Shown: in pieces, positions 6,640 through 49,599 of the stretch
Layout of the letters: the number at the start of each line of letters is the position of its first letter
How positions within the stretch are numbered: position 1 is the first letter of the stretch
Origin: Macrostomum lignano
Lineage: Eukaryota
NCBI GenBank assembly: GCA_002269645.1
Contig: NIVC01003771.1
Coordinates: 1-64,000 of the forward strand
Length of the DNA: 64,000 nt
Direction: 5' to 3'
Translations under genes and position numbers: made by a program
Notes under the pieces: generated by a model
Database searches by the model: none
Told to the model about the DNA's origin: nothing
The model's input: the letters and a program-made list of their open reading frames with translations, nothing else

Positions 6640-6845
6640 GTTAGATCAGTGGCATCATGGGTTAGATCAGTGACATATCAGTGGGTTAGATCAGTGACAT
6701 ATCAGTGGGTTAGATCAGTGACATATCAGAGGGTTAGATCAGTGACATATCAGAGGGTTAGATCAGTGACATATCAGAGGGTTAGATCAGTGACATATCA
6801 GAGGGTTAGATCAGTGACATATCAGTGGGTTAGATCAGTGACATA
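6640..6845 (+). repeat. 24-bp minisatellite (GTTAGATCAGTGACATATCAGWGG, ~8 copies)
   Basis: Direct tandem units; they explain the WVRSVTYQ ORF. Confidence 0.95.
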
Positions 6846-7285: not shown

Positions 7286-8938
7286 CTACTCAGCGCTGTA
7301 GTCGTTGACAGCCTCTTCCACTGCCTCGGGCGACCGAGACTCAGCCTCAATCGGAGCCGTTGAGTTCTTCCGCGGCAGCAGGAAGGGCTTCAGCCGGCGG
7401 GCCCAGCGGCCCAGACTGCGGCGCTGGCTCTCGTCGACGGTGCTGCAGCCGACGGTGGTCCGGTTCAGGCCGTCCAGCAGGTCTGCCAGACTGCGCAGAC
7501 GGCGGATCAGCCGACCACGGAAGCGACGTCCGCGGCGGCGACGCCACTCGGCGGCGGAGTCCGACATTGCAGTCGACTTGCTGCCGCTACCGCGGCGGCT
7601 TCTCCAGCTGGCGCGTCGAAAGAAGCTCCGGATGCGGCGCAAGCGACTCGACCTCACTCTGCGCTTCGGGCTGGCAGTCGGCTCTCGATCTGGGGCAGGA
7701 CTCCGCTTGGTTTCGAGCTCCTCCGATTCCTTCAAATACAAAAAATACTAGAAATACAAAAAGGCGCTTCGATTGTGGAAATCTTTCATTTGCAGTAGTA
7801 ACGTTTGTGCATTCTATGAGAGATTGACTACTGAAGAGTAGCAAGAAAAGAATTTCAAGCGAATCTCTTATAGGACACAAGTATAGCTCACAATTCCTAT
7901 TTGTACATGATTTATTTGCCCAACAATCCGTTCGCCCTCTACTCAAACACGCATACGAGCTACGTACGGGCGCGTATTCGCTCTTCTCCAGCTCATCGGG
8001 ATTGTCGACGCTTTCAAGTTCGTTGGCGATCTCTTCTGTAGCTTCAGAATCCTCAACGGGAGCAGCTGGTGAGGCGGCCGAGTTACTCGGCTTCACTCTC
8101 CGCTGCGGGCGGGCGATCGGCTCTCGATCTGGAGCAGGACTCCGTTTGGCTTCGAGCTCCTCCGATTCCTTCAATAGAAACACAATAAGCGCTCCGATTG
8201 TGGAAATCTTGAAATTGCAATACTAATTCGTGTGTGTGCATTCTATCGAAATCAACTACTGAAGAGTAGCATGACAAGACTCTCTCATGAAAGCGAATCT
8301 CTTATTGTACATGTGGAGGCTCACAATTCATATTTGTACATGTATATAGCGTATTAAACACGCATACTTACGGGCGCGTACTCGCTCTCCTCCAGCTCAT
8401 TGGGCTTATCGACGCTGCCAAGGTCGTTGCCGATCTCCTCCGTAGCTGCAGAGTCCTCAGCGGCAGCAGGTGAGGCGTCCAATATGCGTTGAAGGAATCG
8501 CCGGGTACGGCGCGATCGACTCGAACTCTCGATTCTGCGCTGCCGGCTGGCGGTTGGCTCTAGATCTGGAGCAGGACTCCGTTTGGTTTCGAGCTCCTCC
8601 TCCGATTCCTTCAATAGAAATCCAGAAGCGTCAACTTTGTTAGTTTTACAATTAGCTCGTAGTAAGTCACGTGTGTGCATTCTATAGGAGATTGGCTACT
8701 GAAGAAGAGTAGCAAGAAAAGAATACACAACATGTATTAGCGTATTTCCCTAAAAATAATTGCTTACGGGCGCGTACTCGCTCTTCTCCAGCTCGTCGGG
8801 ATTGTCAACGCTTTCAAGATCGTTGGCGATCTCCTCCGTAGCTGCAGAGCCCTCAGCGTCAGCAGGTGAGGCGGCGAATGCGGAGGCGGCCGCCGCGAGG
8901 CCCAGCAAGAGGAGCGCAGTCAGCAGCAGAGGTTTCAT
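7286..8938 (-). CDS. Secreted modular prepropeptide (~350 aa): signal peptide, three acidic pro-modules with KR sites, and Arg-rich amphipathic peptides (antimicrobial/host-defence-precursor-like); join(8768..8938,8372..8608,7968..8168,7286..7729)
   Basis: ATG at 8938 gives MKPLLLTALLLLGLAAAASAFA. All three introns are phase 0, with donors CCC|GTAAGC, CCC|GTAAGT, CCC|GTACGT and acceptors TTGAAG|GAA. Exon lengths 171/237/201/444 are all multiples of 3. Repeated EEIANDLESVDNPDELEKSEYAP-ESEELETKR-SPAPD motif. Confidence 0.88.
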
Positions 8939-9015: not shown

Positions 9016-9021
9016 TTTATA
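9016..9021 (-). promoter_or_regulatory. Candidate TATA box (TATAAA) of the secreted precursor gene
   Basis: TATAAAGA on the minus strand ~80 nt upstream of the ATG, with an Inr-like CCAGT ~35 nt downstream of it. Confidence 0.45.
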
Positions 9022-9945: not shown

Positions 9946-10009
9946 TTGCCCATACATAAAAAAGGTGACTAAGCTCGACGAATGACAGGAGCTGACCAAC
10001 TTTTGCCAA

Positions 10010-10330
10010 GGAGACAGGGCGCCTATATCTAGGAGACAGGGCGCCTATATCTAGGAGACAGGGGCGCCTATATCAAGGAGACAGGGGCGCCTATATCTAG
10101 GAGACAGGGGCGCCTATATCTAGGAGACAGGGGCGCCTATATCTAGGAGACAGGGGCACCTATATCTAGGAGACAGGGGCACCTATATCTAGGAGACAGG
10201 GGCACCCATCTAGGAGACAGGGGCGCCTATATCTAGGAGACAGGGGCGCCTATATCTAGGAGACAGGGGCGCCTATATCTAGGAGACAGGGGCGCCTATA
10301 TCTAGGAGACAGGGGCGCCCATCTAGAAGA
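10010..10330 (+). repeat. 23-bp minisatellite (GGAGACAGGGGCGCCTATATCTA, ~14 copies)
   Basis: Direct tandem units. Confidence 0.96.
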
Positions 10331-10856
10331 CAGAGGCGCCACCATTGGAGACAGCATTTAGGCCAGATACTAAGATAGACGCTAACACAGACAGAAGTGA
10401 AAAGAAAGACGATGATACTTAAAGCACACAAAAAACTACAAACACAGTTGGATCGATAATACAAAACCACGAAGAGGTCCAAGAAAATGACTTTTTATGA
10501 GGAGGGTTGCTTGATAAAATCGGGATGCAGGATCGGGATCGGGATCATTTTAACATTTATTAAGTAATAACAAACGCTTGCATTTGAAATACACCAGCTG
10601 CAGTTCGATAAATTTTTCACAAAACATAACTTAAAAATATAGAAACAATTTCCTAACACTATCCAATGACGAATGCAAAATGAGTAAAATGGCAAAACCT
10701 AAAAATTGACACGAAAAAATAATTGACATACTTACAGCAGAAAATAAATTTAAGCAACTGAAATAGGGGGGTGTTAACTGCTTTTTGCAGGCGTTAAAAG
10801 TAATCTGAAAAAACCACACGTTTGGAAGTAAAGTTAACTGGGTAGTTACCTACGGG

Positions 10857-21499: not shown

Positions 21500-22092
21500 T
21501 CAGTCATCATTGCTGAAAAACCGCTTGCCCATGCGGATGTAGCTCGCTCGTTTGTCGGCTTCATCAAAGGGACGTTTGCCCATGCGGATGTAGCTTGCTC
21601 GCTTGCCCATGCGGATGTAGCTTGCTCGTTTGTCGGCTTCATCAAAGGGACGCTTGCCCATGCGGATGTAGCTCGCTCGCTTGTCAGCTTCATCAAAGGG
21701 ACGTTTGCCCATGCGGATGTAGCTTGCTCGCTTGCCCATGCGGATGTAGCTTGCTCGTTTGTCGGCTTCATCAAAGGGACGCTTGCCCATGCGGATGTAG
21801 CTCGCTCGCTTGTCAGCTTCATCAAAGGGACGTTTGCCCATGCGGATGTAGCTTGCTCGCTTGCCCATGCGGATGTAGCTTGCTCGCTTGTCTACATCCT
21901 GATTCGATGGCTTGTCGCAGTTATCACAGGCGAAACCGAAACCCACCAAGGATGCGGCAATTAGTAGGAGAATCTTAGCCAGCTTTACCTGAAAGTTAAC
22001 GATAGGTATTTGCAATTGGAACCTAGCCGAGACCAAAAAAGTCCCTGGTCACTATGTCAAATCTTATTGCACGATTGCGAGTTTCTTACCAT
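21500..22092 (-). CDS. Neuropeptide precursor (163 aa) encoding 9 copies of ASYIRM-amide (YIRFamide/FLP-like) plus 5 PFDEAD spacers; join(22090..22092,21500..21988)
   Basis: The ATG is the last codon of exon 1 (AAAATG|GTAAGA). Acceptor TTTCAG|GTA. Signal peptide MVKLAKILLLIAASLVGFGFA. KR-ASYIRMG-KR cassettes show dibasic cleavage plus a Gly amide donor. Confidence 0.95.
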
Positions 22093-23269
22093 TTTTGAGA
22101 GCTTCTCGCTGCGCTTTCCACCAGGTTCACTGGAAGTCTTGACTCTACAGAGAGCTGTGTCTTAAAGTTCCTTCGGGTGGGGGAAGACTGACATGGTACG
22201 GATAACCCCTGTTTCTCCGCATCGCTTCCAGCCAATCAGCATGCGAGCCAAGAAGCCAATCAACCGCGAGTGAAAATCTGGCTGACACGCACTCAGGTAC
22301 TCCTCATAGCATTCCTAGCAACATACCTGGGTTCCCCTACCACCAAAACAGCTGGTGAAAAATAACTAGCCAAGACTTTCTTTGGAGCAAATATCCGTAT
22401 TTAGAAACACTCAGTCTAACTGCAGCTGCAGTTTGTCAGCTGCCACTCCAGCAGCTCCTCGGGTTTTGTTCTCATCAATTTCTTGCTGCAGCCTTGAGTC
22501 TTCTTAAACAAAAGACCCTCTCACTGTTTACCTGCTAGCTAGAGAAGAGAGACAAATGTCGCCAAGTTTAGAGACACTTGGAGTAGCGACAAAATTATCT
22601 CATTGCGAACAGAAAAAATTTGATGGGAAAGGCAAACTAAAAGACAAATTAGCTTGCCTTTCCCGCACAGCAGAGCAGGTCCAGGCTTGAGTCATTATTC
22701 TCATAATAAAACTTCTAAATAAGGTAGGAAACAAAAGCCAAAATTTTTGTGAGCCAAGAAAATTCATGCAGAAAAATAAATTCGCTCAGAAAAGTTCTGC
22801 GAGAGAAAAGTTTCAGATTGAAGTTCTTCAACCGCAAGCCGATCTCCCTTTCTTCCCCTTTACTCCCTCCCCTTCATTCAAGCACAAATCCATCTTCTAT
22901 CGCCGTCTTCGGTATTTGGGCCAAAACTTGACAAGGCATGATGAATGCGGCTGCAAAACGCTGCGTGCCACCTCACTTCTGAGCGCTTTGCCCGAATATG
23001 CTGATCAAATTCTGAGCTTAGTCTCACTCTGGCCTGGACGCTCCGATGAACTGAGCGCTTTAAGCGTGCGCCATATTTTTTTAATTCAATACTAACGAAA
23101 CCGCTAGTGAAGGAGTCGGAGTTTCACTCTTTAGTGCAGGCTCAGAACTGATCGGCTGTTGCAGGCAACAATAACAAAACTTGAATAAATTTTCGAATGC
23201 ATTCTCCCGGCATACACAGTTATGGTTGCAATAAATCATCAACGCAAATGATGCGATGTGAGCATCCCT

Positions 23270-33705: not shown

Positions 33706-33782
33706 CCCTTTAATCATTCAGCCATTAATTAATTCATTTCATCACTCCTTCAGGGGCTCACTGCACAGCCTATATCGCAGCA

Positions 33783-34662
33783 ATGCCCCAGCAGCAGCAT
33801 CAACAGCAGCACCTGCACCCTCACCTGCCGGCTCGCATCAAGTGCGTAGTGGTCGGCGACGGAGGCGCCGGCAAGACCTGCCTCCTGTCCTCTTACTCAC
33901 GCGGAGTCTTCCCAACTGACTACATACCCACGGTGTTCGACAACTACGACGCAGCCGTGATGGTGTGCGGGGCCCAGGTGCATCTCAGCCTGTGGGACAG
34001 CGCCGGCCAAGAGGACTACGACAAGCTGCGGCCGCTGTCCTACCCAGAAACCGACGTCTTTCTCGTCTGCTTCAGCGTCGGCAACAAGCCGTCGTTTGCC
34101 AACGTGCTGGACAAATGGAGCCCCGAGCTGAGGCAGCACGCACCGCAGGCCCCACTGCTCCTAGTCGGCACCAAGGCCGACCTGCGCGATGACGCCGAGT
34201 TCACGGCGCACCTGGCGCTGCACAACGACTGCCCGATCGGGCGCGATGAGGCCGCCGATATGGCGCGCGAAATTGGCGCCGTCAAGTACATCGAGTGCTC
34301 GGCGCTCAAGGGGATCAACGTGTCGCTGGTAATTCGCATGGCAACTAATTGGTTTTTGCAAATCTGTTTTGAGACTAGCTCGTTTCACACCGCCATCAAG
34401 TAAGGCCAAAGGGCCTGTCAACTTAAGCTCATAAAGTAGAGTCCCTAATTATCCTCTTGCTTGTTTTCCCCCATCCTAAGTCCGATTCTCGTCAATTTTT
34501 TTGCTAAACCCTGCTTTCTGGTGTTTCTCAGAACCTCTTGTTTCACCAACAATCCAGGTGTTCGAGGAGGCGGTGAAGTCCGTGCTCTGGCCCGAGTGCA
34601 GCGCCAGTGGCAAGCGCACGACCAGCAAGAAGCACCGGAAGCGGTCGTGCGCACTTCAGTGA
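33783..34662 (+). CDS. Rho-family small GTPase, Rac-like (216 aa); join(33783..34328,34558..34662)
   Basis: G1 GDGGAGKT, switch [11 protein letters not shown]3 [10 protein letters not shown]4 TKAD, G5 ECSAL. Rac-type W56 and [15 protein letters not shown]. Intron CTG|GTAATT...ATCCAG|GTG restores [10 protein letters not shown], a polybasic region and a CAAX box (CALQ*). Confidence 0.96.
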
Positions 34663-37110: not shown

Positions 37111-38199
37111 TCACCACAAGTCGCAGTCGTCTCCAAAGTCTGTGAAGCCCTGCTCGCCAGGCAAATCGTTGCAGGCGAATTCGGCCTCACCGCCAGCCAT
37201 CGAAGCCGACAGCTCACTCGGTCGCCGGGGCCCGTCCAGCTGCTCGCGCTGCTGCAACAGGGACGCCTCGGTCTCCAGGCCCAGCAGGCGCTGGTGCAGC
37301 TCCGAGTGTCCTCCGGCCAAGGCGCAGTCGGCCGGCAGGCGTCCGGACGAGTCCTGAGCCACCGGGCTGGCGCCGGCCGCCAGCAGCACCTCCGCCGTGT
37401 CCGAGTGGCCGAACAGCGCCGCCGCGTGGAGGCTGGCGCCGAAGTGGCCAGCTGGGAATGGCCGGCCGCCGCAATTCAGGATGGCGCGCACCGCCTCCGT
37501 GTGGCCGGCGCGGCAGGCGCGGAGCAGGGCGGCGCCAACGGCGGCTAAGTCGGCGGGGCTGGCGGCGCTAGAAAACTCTGGCGCCGCGGACAGCAGGGCG
37601 CGGCACAGGTCGGCGCTGCCTCGCTGAGCAGCAGCCGACAGCGGAGTGGCGCCATCTCGGCGCGCCAGTAGTGGCCTGGCGCCGGCCGCCAACAGGAGCT
37701 GCGCGCACTGGCGCCGGTCGTGCCAGCAGGCCAGCTGCAGCGCCGTGGCGCCATCAGCGCCGGCACCGCGCCAATCAACGGGCGCCCCAGCCGACAGCAG
37801 CAGCCGCAGGCAGTCGGCGTGGCCGTTCTGAGCGGCCGCCATCAGCGGGGAGCCGCCGAGCCGGCCGCTGACAGGCAGGCTGGGATCGGCGCCGTTGCTT
37901 AGCAACAACTCGGCCAGGTCGGCGCGGCCCGCCTGGCAGGCGTAGAAAAGCGCCGTGGCACCGCTTCGCCGGCGCTGATTGACGGGGGCGCCGCGGCGGA
38001 GCAGGTCGCGCGCGATGGCAGCGTCACCAGCAGCGGCGGCCAGCATCAGCGGGCTGGTGCCCTCCGGGTCGGCGCAGGAAGCCCTGGCGCGCCCGGTGTC
38101 CAGCAGGAGGGCGACGCGGTCGCGGCGGCCAGCCAGGGCGGCTGCTAGCAGCTGGCGGGATTGACGGTCAAAGCTGGACTGCGGCTCCATTGTTGCCAT
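37111..38199 (-). CDS. ANKRD29: Ankyrin-repeat protein, ANKRD29-like (362 aa, single coding exon)
   Basis: About 8 ankyrin repeats (GTSPLMLAA, GATALFYAC, GGSPLMAAA, GATALQLAC, GATPLSAAA, GASLHAAA). N-terminus LLLDTGRARASCADPEGTSPLMLAA resembles ANKRD29 LLLNSGRVDVDCRDSHGTTLLMVAA as recalled. Orthology is not tested. Confidence 0.8.
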   Translation of the reverse strand: MATMEPQSSFDRQSRQLLAAALAGRRDRVALLLDTGRARASCADPEGTSPLMLAAAAGDAAIARDLLRRGAPVNQRRRSGATALFYACQAGRADLAELLLSNGADPSLPVSGRLGGSPLMAAAQNGHADCLRLLLSAGAPVDWRGAGADGATALQLACWHDRRQCAQLLLAAGARPLLARRDGATPLSAAAQRGSADLCRALLSAAPEFSSAASPADLAAVGAALLRACRAGHTEAVRAILNCGGRPFPAGHFGASLHAAALFGHSDTAEVLLAAGASPVAQDSSGRLPADCALAGGHSELHQRLLGLETEASLLQQREQLDGPRRPSELSASMAGGEAEFACNDLPGEQGFTDFGDDCDLW

Positions 38200-39019
38200 G
38201 GTTACTCCGGTGTTGACTCGTTGGACACTAGCTTAAAATAGGAGACAGCAGACACAATAAGATTGCAAGCTCATTTTGGATTTTCAAGTTGTTACATAAG
38301 AACATTTGAACACTGTTCTACCTAGTGTCCACCTAGGTAGGCACACCTCGGTACACCTAGGTTCACGTCGTTTCTAGGTAGTGTCTACCTGGGTGTCTAC
38401 CTGGTACCGATCACTCGCGTCGCCCTAGAGTCTAGACGACTCTAAAAAAACAACAAGATGTCACGGTACAAGTTGCCAGAAAGTCATCAAAGAGTCGCAC
38501 AAGAGTCAAATTGAGGCATTTTCATTGTCTGCAACTGTGCGGCTGTGCTAGATTGGCTGTAGAGTCACTGAGCTTAAGTTGCGTCTAAAGTGCCTATGCG
38601 TCACTTAATGAATCACCTACTGGGGTAGTAGAAATCTAAGCGCTAACGCAACAACTCTTACAATTCTACAACTCTGGTGATGCACTTTTCAATCAACAGT
38701 TGCCTCTCCATCGCATTACAGTTGTTTGAAGTCATTAAAAAGTTTATTCTCCAAAGTCCCTAAACTCACTAGACAGTTGTTTCTATGACTCTTTATTGAT
38801 TCTTGCCATAGTAATGTTTTCAACAAGCTGGGTCCAAATTGGGGATGCCAAATCAAAAACCAGAATGCCAGCTGGCATGAGTCAAGATTTTCAAAATCAA
38901 CTAAATTACTGTCTCTATCATACCCTTCACACTACTGAGCCTCTGACCCACAGAAATTGTAGAAGTCTGCAGACTGCACATTTATAGATTACTCAAACTT
39001 GGCAATTGATAGATAGTCT

Positions 39020-46000: not shown

Positions 46001-46985
46001 CACGTGACGAAAAATTATGAGTTACTAAGCACTGATTGGCTGGCTTGGAATGCAAAGTCTATGGTTGGGTCTGTCATCACTTGTCGTTTGCTTCTATTGA
46101 AAACAAGGAGTAAAAGTAGGTAGAGAAAATTTGCATCCTCATATGCATTATTGCAACATTTACATTACGAGCTACTGAAAGGTCATGCAGCTTCAATGTC
46201 GAGTTAGCACAAGCTCTTACATCAGCGACAAACTCGATCGCAAGCTCGCGAATTTTCTTCTCCGCCTCGGTGATCTGTCTCTCCGTGCTGTTCACTCGCT
46301 CCATGTACTTTTCGTAGACGCCAATCTTCGACTTGCAGTCAGCGAGCACAGCTTCAATGTCGGCCTTGTACTTGACCACCGCTTCGCTGAAGTTGGACAC
46401 CTCGTGCTCTTTGTGCTCGTTGAAGGCGCAGATGATGCACACACAGGCTTGGCATGGCTCGCAGTAGAAGCGGACGACCTCATCCGGGTGGTCCTTGCAG
46501 ATGATGTCCTTCTCTGTTTCGACGTCAAATATCGCATGGTCGCGTGTCACCTTTGTCTCCTTGTGCTGCTCAACGCAGGCCCGGCAGAGCAGCTTGTTGC
46601 AGTCCAGGCACTTGCTGCTGGCCTGCTCCTTGGCCCGCCGGCCGACCATCTTGCAGATGTCGCAGCTGGCCGAACTCGTGCCAGACTTCTGCTGCCTGTC
46701 CATCGTGTCGGACAGGTTGGAGATGAGGAAATTGTCCGGCAGCTTCTTGGCGCCGCCGACCGGCAGCTGAGTTCGCTTCCGGCACAGCGGACAGGTGAAC
46801 TCTCGATAGTCTGAGTACTTCTTGTAGGCCGCCTCGGAGGCGATATGGTTCTCGATACAGACCTCGCAAAATGTGTGCAGACAGGACAGACACTTAGGTG
46901 TCTTGAACGGGCTCATGCAGATCTTGCAAACCAGAAATTCGTCGTGAATCTCCTGCACAAGCTTGCCGGCTTGAGTTGTTGCCAT
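42907..46985 (-). CDS. TRIM protein (RING, B-box1, B-box2, coiled coil, disordered TQT-motif/poly-Q tail; ~536 aa), N-terminus TRIM2/3/56/NHL-1-like; join(46221..46985,45570..45919,43992..44273,42907..43120)
   Basis: RING CKIC..CLHTFCEVC..CPLC; B1 CDIC..CLDC..LCRAC..H..H; B2 CKDH..C..C..C..C..H..H. Junction phases 0/2/2 are all consistent with GT-AG sites. Stop TAG at 42907. Confidence 0.88.
43182..43300 (+). mobile_element. hAT-type element terminus (CAGGGTCGGCAAGCTCGGGCCCGCGGG), copy 2, in the last TRIM intron
   Basis: Classic CAGGG..GGCAA terminus plus GGCCCGCGGG; matches 32135-32250 in reverse complement. Confidence 0.65.
43300..43830 (+). repeat. (CTCCT)n pentanucleotide microsatellite with CAACT variants
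   Basis: Direct reading; continuous with the hAT end. Confidence 0.98.
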
Positions 46986-49599
46986 GACGACCGGACTGAC
47001 TCGCGGAAGTACCGTGGCGGAAGTGGCCGTAGAAGAGGTCGGCGATAGACAGGCAGATTCTAGGCGGCTGCTTCTGGAGCGGGATTTGTCATCCCCGGTG
47101 GCTGTGGGTCAGTTGAAGGGTGGTTTGCTTTTATTTTTCTTAATTTTATCTGCAAGGAATATGCAAAAATATGGAACAGCGCAAGGATACGAAACACGGA
47201 TACCAGATCATCTGTATCAGTTGAAAGACGTCCTTAGCCTTCTAGAGTATCGATCTGCCTGCCCTTTGTCTGAATATTCGATAGTTAGTTGCAAAGCTCA
47301 CCCGGTTTGACTGATCCTAGGTGTGCTGTTGATTGAAATTTTTCGACATACGATACTGAAGGCGATGAAGCTGCGTCAGAGCTGCAGTTTGGGGCCAAAG
47401 TGCACTCAGATCCGCTGAAAATGCTTCTAAGCGTCTAACACATTCCCTTTCACTGCGTTCAGGCAAGTCGTTCAGGCAGACAGGCGGGGACAGGGCCAAG
47501 TCACCATTGGGTCTCGTCTCGCGGTGCAGCGGCGCAAATGGTCGAGGAACATTCGGAAAGCTGGAACATCAGCCCCTCATCCCCAAAATGCAGGTCAGAC
47601 TTTCGAGAGAAGGACGGGGAGCCTGGGAGGAAAACTACTGGGGTGCAGGGCGGGGTTTAGAATCATTTTTAGATTTCGCCATCCTGGAATTTTCCTTGCC
47701 CCACAGACAGAGGACATTTCTGCGTAATTTCTACCGCTTGCCATTTTGCTTGGCCCAGGTGTACAGTCCATGTGTACAGTTACAGCAACACGTACAGGTT
47801 GGTGAATCAGAGAGAGGGGCAGTACGACAGGCCGAAGCTGATCGTTGCTATATCGATGCAGTGAAACACCGAAGAGAGGGAAGAAGTGGAGAAAGGGCTT
47901 AGCTGTGGCCTAGCAGCGGAGCTTTAGATTGTGCAACAGACTACTTCAGAAGGATTAAGACACAAGTTGCAATGCTGTGGATACCATGCTTTAGAAAACT
48001 TTCAAGACTTCGTCTGACACATTCGTGTGCTATTTTTAAGCAAATTTATTTAGTTTAAAATGGCCCATGACGATGAAAACTAGGAATGTTGCCAACAAAA
48101 GTTTTATGTTATAATCGTTGTTTTGATTAAGTTGATGCACCGACGAGCGAGTCACCAACGCGGCACTGTATCGCCGACCTGGTCCATCCAAGCGACCTGT
48201 TGCTCGGTCGACGACTTCAACTTCCAGGCCTCATCATCCTAGAAAAGGATGTTGCTCCCAAAGCTTCAAACTTACTAATAGTTTCAAAGCCCACCACACT
48301 TTGGCTGACATCAAAGACTTTTTAGGCCTTTTAAAGATGAAAACCATTTCAGATCTGCTAATGCATTCATGCTTAAACAAAAATCTCTCTGTATCCTGTC
48401 ACGCCGTCCTCAGGGTGTGCCAAGCTGGCATGATAAAACTAGAGCCCATTTCCCCAGCTAGACTGGTTGCTCCTTAGACCTTATCTGGCTCGAAATAAAA
48501 CCAAAAACAGTTGTACAAACAGGCATTTAAGCGTAACAACACGCGGCTGCTTACTCTGCGTCCGGTAAGAGTACCGGCCCGAGACTCCGCTGGACATGCC
48601 AATCTGCGCGCCGTTGATCTGAGGGCTTCCGAAGTTGCGGCGAAAACTCTACCAGCTACGTACTGGGTCGTGAAGATTCTCCGCCTTTTATTTCCTAGCC
48701 ACATGCTTTCCAGTCGATTTCAAGCTGGCGTACGCGAGCGAACTGCTTTTTCCCCAACGATCAGAAGTTAGGGAAAGGTAAAGTGTGTGCCCCCTACCTG
48801 CGCCGCTGGATAATGAGGCTGTGAGGAATGCTGCACCTTGCAGTGGAACAGAGCGACGGGGTAGTTGGAGAAAAGGAGGCATTGGTACTTGCACAATACA
48901 GTAATACTGTATTGTGTATTTTTGTTGTTGTTGTTGTTGTTGTTGCTGCTGCTTTTGTAAGAAAGATGTTTTCTAGCCGGTTTCTAGCTGGTATATTAAT
49001 ATATTAACACCAATGATAATGCCAATATTAATACCAATGATTTGCGCCCGTTAACGGCGCCTTTTGAGTAGTACGAGCTACATTAAAGCTCTTAAAGCAT
49101 TTTCCATGAGTACATTGAACCCTTTCTAATTGAGTGAGCCACAGCTCTATTAAGCGCCCAAAAATTTTAGAAAACAAAAAATATTCAATGGTGGTGGCTC
49201 ACCCTCACGTTCTAAACCCCCGTGCTTCACTCTTGGAATTTAGCCATATAAGTTCTAGATTTCTATGTGTAGCTTAGGCAAAGTGCCTGTAGTACAATAT
49301 ACTCTCTCATTATAATGAAAGATGCCTGCTGCCTATGGACAAAACTTAGAGCAGAGTGATGCTATGTGCTATGGTAGGTAGTAGCGAAAAAAGGTCAGTC
49401 AAAAAGAAAGTCTAGTAGCAGTCTAGGGGTTAAGGCATATTTTGGCAATCAACTTGTTCAGAAGAGTGCAGCACAGCAAGGCGGCATGCAGAAGCGGTTT
49501 ATGGCTCAAGGCTAGCTTTGTGGCGGCTCATTGTGTATTTAATAGAAGCGTAACTTATATGGCTAAATATATAATTTATGATGAATGTTCAGTGCGAAC

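Follow-up and report, generated by a model that had tools for sequence, protein, structure and literature searches.

The gene discussed here, Mlig021339, lies on the minus strand of a 64,000-nucleotide stretch of the Macrostomum lignano genome (positions 1 to 64,000 of contig NIVC01003771.1, which is contig G000:C3771 of a 764-Mb assembly comprising 5269 contigs), and we refer to this whole stretch as the window. Mlig021339 is a real, transcribed gene found so far only in Macrostomum lignano and, judged by searches of protein and domain collections, it is an orphan, lineage-restricted gene of no described family. The explanation that we favour, with a confidence falling just short of even, is that it encodes a secretory pro-protein that neutralises itself and is processed by convertases, and in which the helical, Arg-rich C-terminal domain would be the active part. 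A specifically antimicrobial role is a narrower sub-case of this explanation that we place on the unlikely side, and host defence and a role in a reproductive or other glandular secretion are about equally probable.

A prior reading of the window from its letters only (the sequence-only reading) had proposed that positions 7286 to 8938 encode a multi-peptide antimicrobial or cytolytic precursor with a conserved scaffold and hypervariable cargo. The secreted-type, modular and precursor-like organization that it described stands, as do the helices that AlphaFold2 (AF2) predicts in the Arg-rich segments; the cargo boundaries and the expected gene family do not, and the amphipathicity lacks statistical support.

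Gene model, transcript and modular architecture

Conceptual splicing of the minus-strand segments 8938-8768, 8608-8372, 8168-7968 and 7729-7286 joins four exons (171 + 237 + 201 + 444 = 1053 nt of coding sequence) into a product of 350 amino acids (aa), exactly as the sequence-only reading had written it except that the TAG stop is at 7288-7286. The identical 350-aa product is carried by GenBank entries PAA47760.1 and PAA49876.1 ("hypothetical protein BOX15_Mlig021339g3/g4"). The introns, of 159, 203 and 238 nt, are all in phase 0 and obey the GT-AG rule, with donors CCC/GTAAG or CCC/GTACG and acceptors TTGAAG/GAA (the slash marks the splice junction), and GC content is 64% in exons vs 36% in introns. 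The GenBank annotation derives from a genome-guided RNA-seq transcriptome assembled with StringTie, TACO and TransDecoder (PMC5730564). A spliced transcript therefore exists, and the concern of the earlier reading that there might be none does not apply. Open reading frames (ORFs) on the antisense plus strand (7302-7827) were set aside as by-products of the GC-rich codon composition. The features of the gene, in the direction of transcription, are as follows.

9016..9021, minus strand: TATAAA box, a candidate core promoter on the strength of its sequence, 83 nt upstream of the ATG
8873..8938, minus strand: start codon and putative signal peptide, residues 1-22, MKPLLLTALLLLGLAAAASAFA (exon 1)
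8768..8872, minus strand: acidic module 1, first half, ASPADAEGSAATEEIANDLESVDNPDELEKSEYAP (end of exon 1)
8609..8767, minus strand: intron 1, 159 nt, GT-AG, phase 0, homologous to introns 2 and 3
8579..8608, minus strand: acidic module 1, second half, with the first conserved dibasic site (ESEEELET-KR; exon 2)
8534..8578, minus strand: Pro-rich spacer peptide 1 and RR, SPAPDLEPTASRQ-RR, conserved
8474..8533, minus strand: variable segment (cargo) 1, IESSSRSRRTRRFLQRILDA, net +4, AF2 helix 87-101
8372..8473, minus strand: acidic module 2, first half (SPAAAEDS...ESEYAP), adjoining cargo 1 with no basic site between
8169..8371, minus strand: intron 2, 203 nt, from the splice model
8097..8168, minus strand: ESEELEA-KR, spacer peptide 2 and RR, SPAPDREPIARPQ-RR; I154 is polymorphic
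8073..8096, minus strand: variable segment 2, VKPSNSAA, net +1, with the look of a truncated remnant
7968..8072, minus strand: acidic module 3, first half, SPAAPVEDSEATEEIANELESVDNPDELEKSEYAP, from the splice model
7730..7967, minus strand: intron 3, 238 nt, from the splice model
7658..7729, minus strand: ESEELET-KR, spacer peptide 3 and KRR, SPAPDREPTASP-KRR (exon 4)
7367..7657, minus strand: Arg-rich domain (cargo 3), 97 aa, net +25 (exon 4; AF2 helices)
7286..7366, minus strand: acidic C-terminal tail NSTAPIEAESRSPEAVEEAVNDYSAE, net -6, and TAG stop (exon 4)

The N-terminus has Lys2, a hydrophobic core of 16 residues, small residues at -3/-1 (ASA/AFA) and an AF2 helix at residues 2-21. From these features we predict that the product enters the secretory pathway. 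The remainder is built from three copies of the pattern S-P-A..EEIANDLESVDNPDELEKSEYAP/ESEELET, KR, SPAPD(R/L)EP(T/I)A.., RR, such that the signal peptide is followed by acidic module 1, KR, SPAPDLEPTASRQ, RR, cargo 1 and acidic module 2, then by KR, SPAPDREPIARPQ, RR, cargo 2 and acidic module 3, and lastly by KR, SPAPDREPTASP, KRR, cargo 3 and the acidic tail. All the elements listed by the sequence-only reading (the signal peptide, the KR- and RR-bounded repeats, the cargoes IESSSRSRRTRRFLQRILDA and VKPSNSAA, the Arg-rich last exon and the single Cys) match this arrangement. Every internal exon runs from midway through one acidic module to midway through the following one, in phase 0-0; because these exons are symmetrical, duplication or skipping of a unit leaves the frame intact.

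Charge is distributed very unevenly along this chain. The acidic modules, each 41-43 aa long, carry net charges of -15, -13 and -15 (a total of -43, with the exon-2 ESEEELET counted in module 1), cargoes 1 to 3 carry +4, +1 and +25, and the tail carries -6. The mature protein is a strong polyampholyte, with a fraction of charged residues (FCR) of 0.38 and a net charge per residue (NCPR) of -0.02. Its charge-patterning value kappa is about 0.35, compared with 0.157 +/- 0.026 in 1000 shuffles (z = 7.5), and the charges are thus markedly segregated in blocks. The earlier proposal that acidic pro-pieces neutralise cationic cargo holds for the protein as a whole, which has 67 acidic and 60 basic residues, but fails unit by unit (-15/+4, -13/+1, -15/+25).

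Modelled from the single sequence, AF2 returns a mean predicted local distance difference test score (pLDDT) of 54 and renders the acidic modules and Pro-rich spacers as coil. Apart from a short turn at 80-83, immediately ahead of cargo 1, it places structure only in helices: the signal peptide, cargo 1 (87-101), residues 231-245, 260-295 and 303-320, and the tail (337-347), with pLDDT of about 58-73 for those in cargo segments. The product is therefore predicted by this model to be mostly disordered, with helix-prone Arg/Phe/Leu/Trp segments in its Arg-rich parts. Cargo 3 contains the protein's only Cys, two N-x-S/T sequons and 10 internal di- or tetrabasic sites (RR/RRRR/RK).

All four Tyr residues follow an acidic residue, three of them at the same position of each acidic module (SEYAPESEE) and one in NDYSAE near the C-terminus (7298-7300), where two homeologous copies have Asp. 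This context resembles the tyrosine-sulfation sites of secretory proteins, which would make them candidate sites, and genes of the Sulfotransfer_3 family are present in the M. lignano genome. The S-x-E motif of secreted kinases is not enriched (5 observed vs 6.4 expected), and an origin of the Arg-rich exon from a microsatellite was discarded when Tandem Repeats Finder showed no array within the exons.

Copies, relatives and repeat evolution

Six-frame searches of the whole genome, made separately with the scaffold and with exon 4, recover four loci only, on contigs C3771 (the window), C4342, C185 and C2482. Over the 2-kb gene region these are 100% (C4342), 99.6% (C185) and 97.2% (C2482) identical to the window, with collinear flanks, and all four keep the intact 350-aa frame and every splice site. 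They are homeologs or alleles of a neopolyploid genome and not a diversified family, contrary to the earlier expectation of paralogues that share a pro-module and differ in cargo. Two weak additional matches in the same genome (L023 and L024, E 4-10) proved on inspection to be unrelated ORFs.

Outside M. lignano, a word-indexed search of 5.8e9 proteins gave no homologue, and an exhaustive phmmer search of 1.84e9 representative proteins matched only versions of this gene from older M. lignano assemblies. Pfam contains no family for it and the PDB sequences no match, in agreement with the earlier reading, which did not recognise a described family in it. Sub-threshold Pfam matches to SLX9 and BNIP2 (E >= 0.14) were rejected, and an old UniRef name, 'Retinitis pigmentosa 1-like 1', is a low-complexity artefact.

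The four copies diverge in a mosaic fashion. No differences separate them in the 5' flank, exons 1-2 and intron 1, save a single synonymous change found in C185 alone; in C2482, strong divergence is confined to introns 2 and 3; and C185 has introns like those of the window together with exon-3/4 and 3'-flank variants like those of C2482. This pattern suggests recombination or gene conversion between homeologs.

The three units of the gene can be aligned through their introns as well as their exons, with the introns far more diverged than the exonic scaffold. The repeats therefore arose by tandem DNA duplication of an exon plus its intron and not by chance. Between units, the scaffold (acidic module plus spacer) shows a proportion of synonymous differences (pS) of 0.16-0.27 and a ratio of non-synonymous to synonymous proportions (pN/pS) of 0.25-0.60, a comparison which indicates that the scaffold is under moderate purifying selection. 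In the first 15 codons of cargoes 1 and 3, which are homologous and share 78% of their nucleotides and 8 of 15 residues, pS is 0.24, the same as in the scaffold, while pN/pS is 0.88, as against 0.25 for the scaffold of units 1 and 3. Cargo segments thus evolve about three times faster than the scaffold.

This difference bears out the earlier contrast between conserved scaffold and variable cargo, but no hypervariable gene family accompanies it. The cargoes are 20, 8 and 97 aa long and differ mainly by large insertions or deletions (indels), and we read their variation as mainly indels and relaxed constraint inside one gene, with no family-wide hypervariability. A hand count gives 15 of the 24 nucleotides of cargo 2 as identical to the start of cargo 3, and cargo 2 resembles a truncated 8-codon remnant, no longer cationic, of a common ancestral segment whose arginines it would have lost. 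The acidic tail, in turn, resembles a degenerate acidic module in local alignment.

Between homeologs, exons are 6-12 times less diverged than introns, with most of the divergence in introns 2 and 3; C2482 and C185, for example, differ by 3 substitutions in 1053 exonic positions and by 20 in 600 intronic positions (p = 7e-7). Five of the seven coding differences among homeologs are non-synonymous (T154I, P163S, L237R, P334S and D347Y; pN/pS 0.84), none of the five falls in an acidic module, and residue 154 is Thr in the C185 and C2482 copies.

Processing, precedents and competing explanations

The dibasic sites point to proteolytic processing. The three KR and three RR sites are invariant across the three units and all four gene copies, and the Pro-rich 12-13-mer is the only kind of element with conserved dibasic sites on both sides. 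Its consensus, SPAPD(R/L)EP(T/I)A(S/R)(P/R)(K/Q), is invariant at 9 of 13 positions and most variable at the C-terminus. Several genes for proprotein-convertase P-domain proteins, and DPP-IV-like genes, are present in the M. lignano genome, and a PC2 homologue of this species has a severe RNA interference (RNAi) phenotype (PMC4490696).

Under the explanation that we favour, the gene grew as a symmetrical (phase 0-0) exon and its intron were duplicated in tandem. A unit encodes half an acidic coil, KR, the Pro-rich 12-13-mer and RR, then a basic segment that evolves fast, and finally the opening half of the acidic coil that follows; in the last exon the basic segment has expanded into the helix-prone Arg-rich domain of 97 residues. 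Within the cell and the granule, the acidic modules and tail may neutralise the Arg-rich parts in cis, so that a strongly polycationic domain able to bind membranes or polyanions would do no harm and could be packed. Acidic and basic parts would then be parted by convertase-type cleavage at KR and RR, by dilution on release, or by both, and Arg-rich helical fragments of exon 4 would be the active products.

A number of observations weigh against a pro-protein processed in this way, and several of them concern the cargoes that the sequence-only reading took to be excised at dibasic sites. Cargoes 1 and 2 have no C-terminal dibasic boundary and run on into acidic sequence (...DA-SPAAAED and ...AA-SPAAPVED), so that cleavage at KR and RR would leave each of them fused to 41-42 acidic residues, with predicted net charges of about -9 and -14 for the fused products. 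Cargo 2 is in any case not cationic, and cargo 3, unless shielded by its helices, would be cut by a convertase at its 10 internal sites into pieces of 5-25 residues. At P1' the RR sites have Ile or Val, which is uncommon in convertase substrates. The hydrophobic moment (muH) of the cargo peptides is high, at 0.56-0.71, a value that is reached by a fraction of 0.05-0.12 of composition-matched shuffles, or 0.40 for SLGRWARRLKPFLLPRK; amphipathicity is thus not significant against shuffles, and the earlier amphipathic label has no statistical support. The hydrophobic fraction of the cargo is only 30-41%, and together these values would suit a peptide that binds polyanions or penetrates cells no less well than a lytic one. 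Finally, the overall confidence of the AF2 model is low, and the homeolog pN/pS means that recent constraint at the protein level is not demonstrated.

The sequence-only reading had also interpreted the Pro-rich peptides as X-Pro/X-Ala spacers to be trimmed by a dipeptidyl peptidase. Read as dipeptides, they run SP-AP-D(R/L)-EP-(T/I)A-(S/R)(P/R)-(K/Q)R-R, in which Arg or Leu occupies the third dipeptide and the series ends in the RR site that precedes the cargo. Because of this break in the register and the terminal RR, dipeptidyl-peptidase trimming would be neither sufficient nor needed, and that part of the proposal is not supported.

Sequence features would place Mlig021339 in the general class of dibasic-site secretory precursors. 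Its architecture appears nearest to granin-like proteins and to the precursors that combine an anionic propiece with a cationic peptide, of which Hydra arminins and frog preprodermaseptins are examples. However, it has no sequence homology to arminins, preprodermaseptins or granins, and several of their defining features are absent from it. Hydra arminins are taxonomically restricted antimicrobial-peptide precursors with demonstrated antimicrobial activity, whose cationic part is presumably released by proteolysis. Arminins and Mlig021339 are alike in being orphans with a signal peptide, an anionic pro-region and a cationic C-terminal region, such that charge is neutralised within one polypeptide. 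Arminins, compared here by description, differ in having a single module, no repeated exon units and no Pro-rich peptide between dibasic sites.

Frog-skin preprodermaseptins, like precursors with charge-neutralising pro-pieces of the defensin/proMBP type, carry a single peptide per precursor; they belong to large families of paralogues in which the mature peptide varies by substitution. Mlig021339 shares with them an acidic pro-piece that ends in KR before a cationic segment, and a prepro scaffold that is more conserved than the cargo. In contrast, it is a single gene in four homeologous copies, and its segments vary mainly by large indels, two of the three being without a C-terminal boundary. 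Honeybee apidaecin and promelittin are matured by dibasic cleavage and dipeptidyl-peptidase trimming, and the repeated conserved peptide of apidaecin is itself a cationic Pro-rich antimicrobial. Tandem units, a dibasic site and Pro or Ala at even positions (SP-AP-..-EP-TA-SP) recall these precursors, whereas in Mlig021339 the register is broken at D-R/D-L, RR stands directly before the cargo and the repeated Pro-rich peptide is neutral or acidic. Granins belong to the regulated secretory pathway and are acidic and disordered; some of their fragments, such as catestatin, are Arg-rich and antimicrobial. Like granins, the Mlig021339 product is predicted to be disordered, has numerous dibasic sites and carries Tyr in acidic surroundings, but it is much smaller, and its acidic and basic residues are equal in content and grouped into blocks, whereas granins are net acidic.

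The alternative that survives best, although we still consider it fairly unlikely, is that the protein is processed minimally or not at all and that the whole blocky polyampholyte serves as a granule-condensing or coacervating matrix component of a gland secretion. Candidate glands would be the prostate (seminal fluid), the rhabdite, pharyngeal, cement/shell and adhesive/releasing glands. Acid-base pairing within and between molecules would condense such a material, and sea water would swell or dissolve it. The strong segregation of charge, the near-zero net charge, the predicted disorder and the signal peptide all suit this role, and orphan status is shared with many lineage-specific secreted transcripts of M. 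lignano glands: 76 transcripts are limited to the prostate, most of them unannotated (PMC5977470), and genes of the tail region are enriched for signal peptides and evolve fast (PMC7336406). Conserved KR and RR pairs around a conserved short peptide in all three units nevertheless point to proteolytic processing, and a 350-aa protein is small for a structural secretion and is without the Cys, DOPA-type or glycan-rich features typical of such materials.

Published expression data bear weakly on the same question. Neither Mlig021339 nor its UniProt and GenBank accessions or peptide strings occur in the M. lignano full texts and supplements searched, a negative that is uninformative for Tables S6 and S8 of PMC7336406, which were incompletely covered. 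Table S11 of the same paper, which maps all transcripts screened by in situ hybridization (ISH) to Mlig_37v3 identifiers of the format Mlig016310.g1, does not contain Mlig021339. If the numbering is equal across annotation versions, this absence is weak evidence that the prostate and tail genes screened to date do not include this one, and it counts to that small degree against a gland matrix protein.

Quite improbable, in our view, is a neuropeptide or peptide-hormone precursor in which the acidic modules would act as spacers between the products, the three Pro-rich peptides, and the Arg-rich region would end up as short fragments. A point of reference lies 13 kb away in the window (21,500-22,094, minus strand), where a two-exon gene with its ATG at 22,092, a short intron and an ORF running to 21,500 encodes a signal peptide, nine ASYIRMG-KR repeats and PFDEAD-KR spacers. 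This gene is predicted from its sequence to be a textbook multi-copy amidated neuropeptide precursor with ASYIRM-amide as its product, a peptide reminiscent of the flatworm (G)YIRFamides; it has no Pfam match, and the peptide string occurs in no relevant paper of the literature searched.

Mlig021339 shares with flatworm multi-copy precursors of this kind a signal peptide, acidic spacers and short peptides between KR and RR sites, and these sites are of the PC1/2 type rather than furin R-x-x-R sites. The threefold repetition of a largely invariant short peptide with dibasic sites on both sides would also be expected of such a precursor, and the M. lignano PC2 homologue is expressed in the nervous system (PMC4490696). 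Unlike the ASYIRMG-KR gene, however, Mlig021339 has no Gly-dibasic amidation signal, as no Gly precedes RR in any of the three Pro-rich copies (SPAPDLEPTASRQ, SPAPDREPIARPQ and SPAPDREPTASP(K)). Its putative spacers are long (41-43 aa) and conserved as well as the peptide is, and the C-terminus of the peptide, usually the conserved end in neuropeptides, varies most. The large, +25 Arg-rich C-terminal domain is likewise atypical for such precursors.

Very improbable is the reading that the ORF is recent, restricted to this lineage and in effect neutral, being transcribed without specific function and modular only as a by-product of tandem duplication: the failure to find a homologue, the homeolog pN/pS of 0.84 (on only 7 changes) and the degenerate look of the cargo 2 unit speak for it, but all four copies retain the frame and splice sites, the scaffold has kept every dibasic site and has a pN/pS of 0.25-0.6 at a pS of 0.16-0.27, unit introns have diverged far more than exons, and the gene has a canonical signal peptide and a TATA box.

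Genomic surroundings and significance

Minisatellites flank Mlig021339 at 6640-6845 (24 bp x 8.7 copies) and 10,009-10,340 (23 bp x 14.7 copies); they are also present on the homeologous contigs, and BLAST alignments break and shift register across the arrays. Long minisatellite arrays occupy the window at 13.8-14.7, 23.3-25.7, 36.0-37.1, 43.2-43.9, 49.6-50.4, 52.0-53.2 and 54.2-56.4 kb and are open in several frames on both strands, which generates long spurious ORFs with repeated peptide motifs. Among other coding sequences, positions 33,729-34,403 (plus strand) form one open frame that encodes a small GTPase domain of the Ras/Rho type (Pfam Ras, E = 1.4e-43). An exon for a RING and B-box (TRIM-like) protein lies at 46,077-47,108 (minus strand) and one for an ankyrin-repeat protein at 37,111-38,232 (minus strand), both of them ordinary neighbours with no evident link to Mlig021339.

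The innate-immunity effectors and gland secretions of flatworms are poorly known, and M. lignano is a model in which transgenesis and RNAi are available. If Mlig021339 encodes a gland matrix protein or is a neutral young gene, it would be one more uncharacterised lineage-specific secreted protein of a kind common in this genome. If instead the Arg-rich domain is a host-defence or partner-manipulating effector, the gene would offer a tractable case of an orphan secreted peptide system built by exon duplication, and an example of how charge neutralisation in cis can make a polycation safe to produce. At its most far-reaching, and we consider this rather unlikely, Mlig021339 would represent the first gene-encoded linear cationic host-defence peptide system in a free-living flatworm, in which the duplicated units would be a source of new peptides and three conserved acidic modules would hold a +25 Arg-rich helical effector inactive until convertase cleavage.

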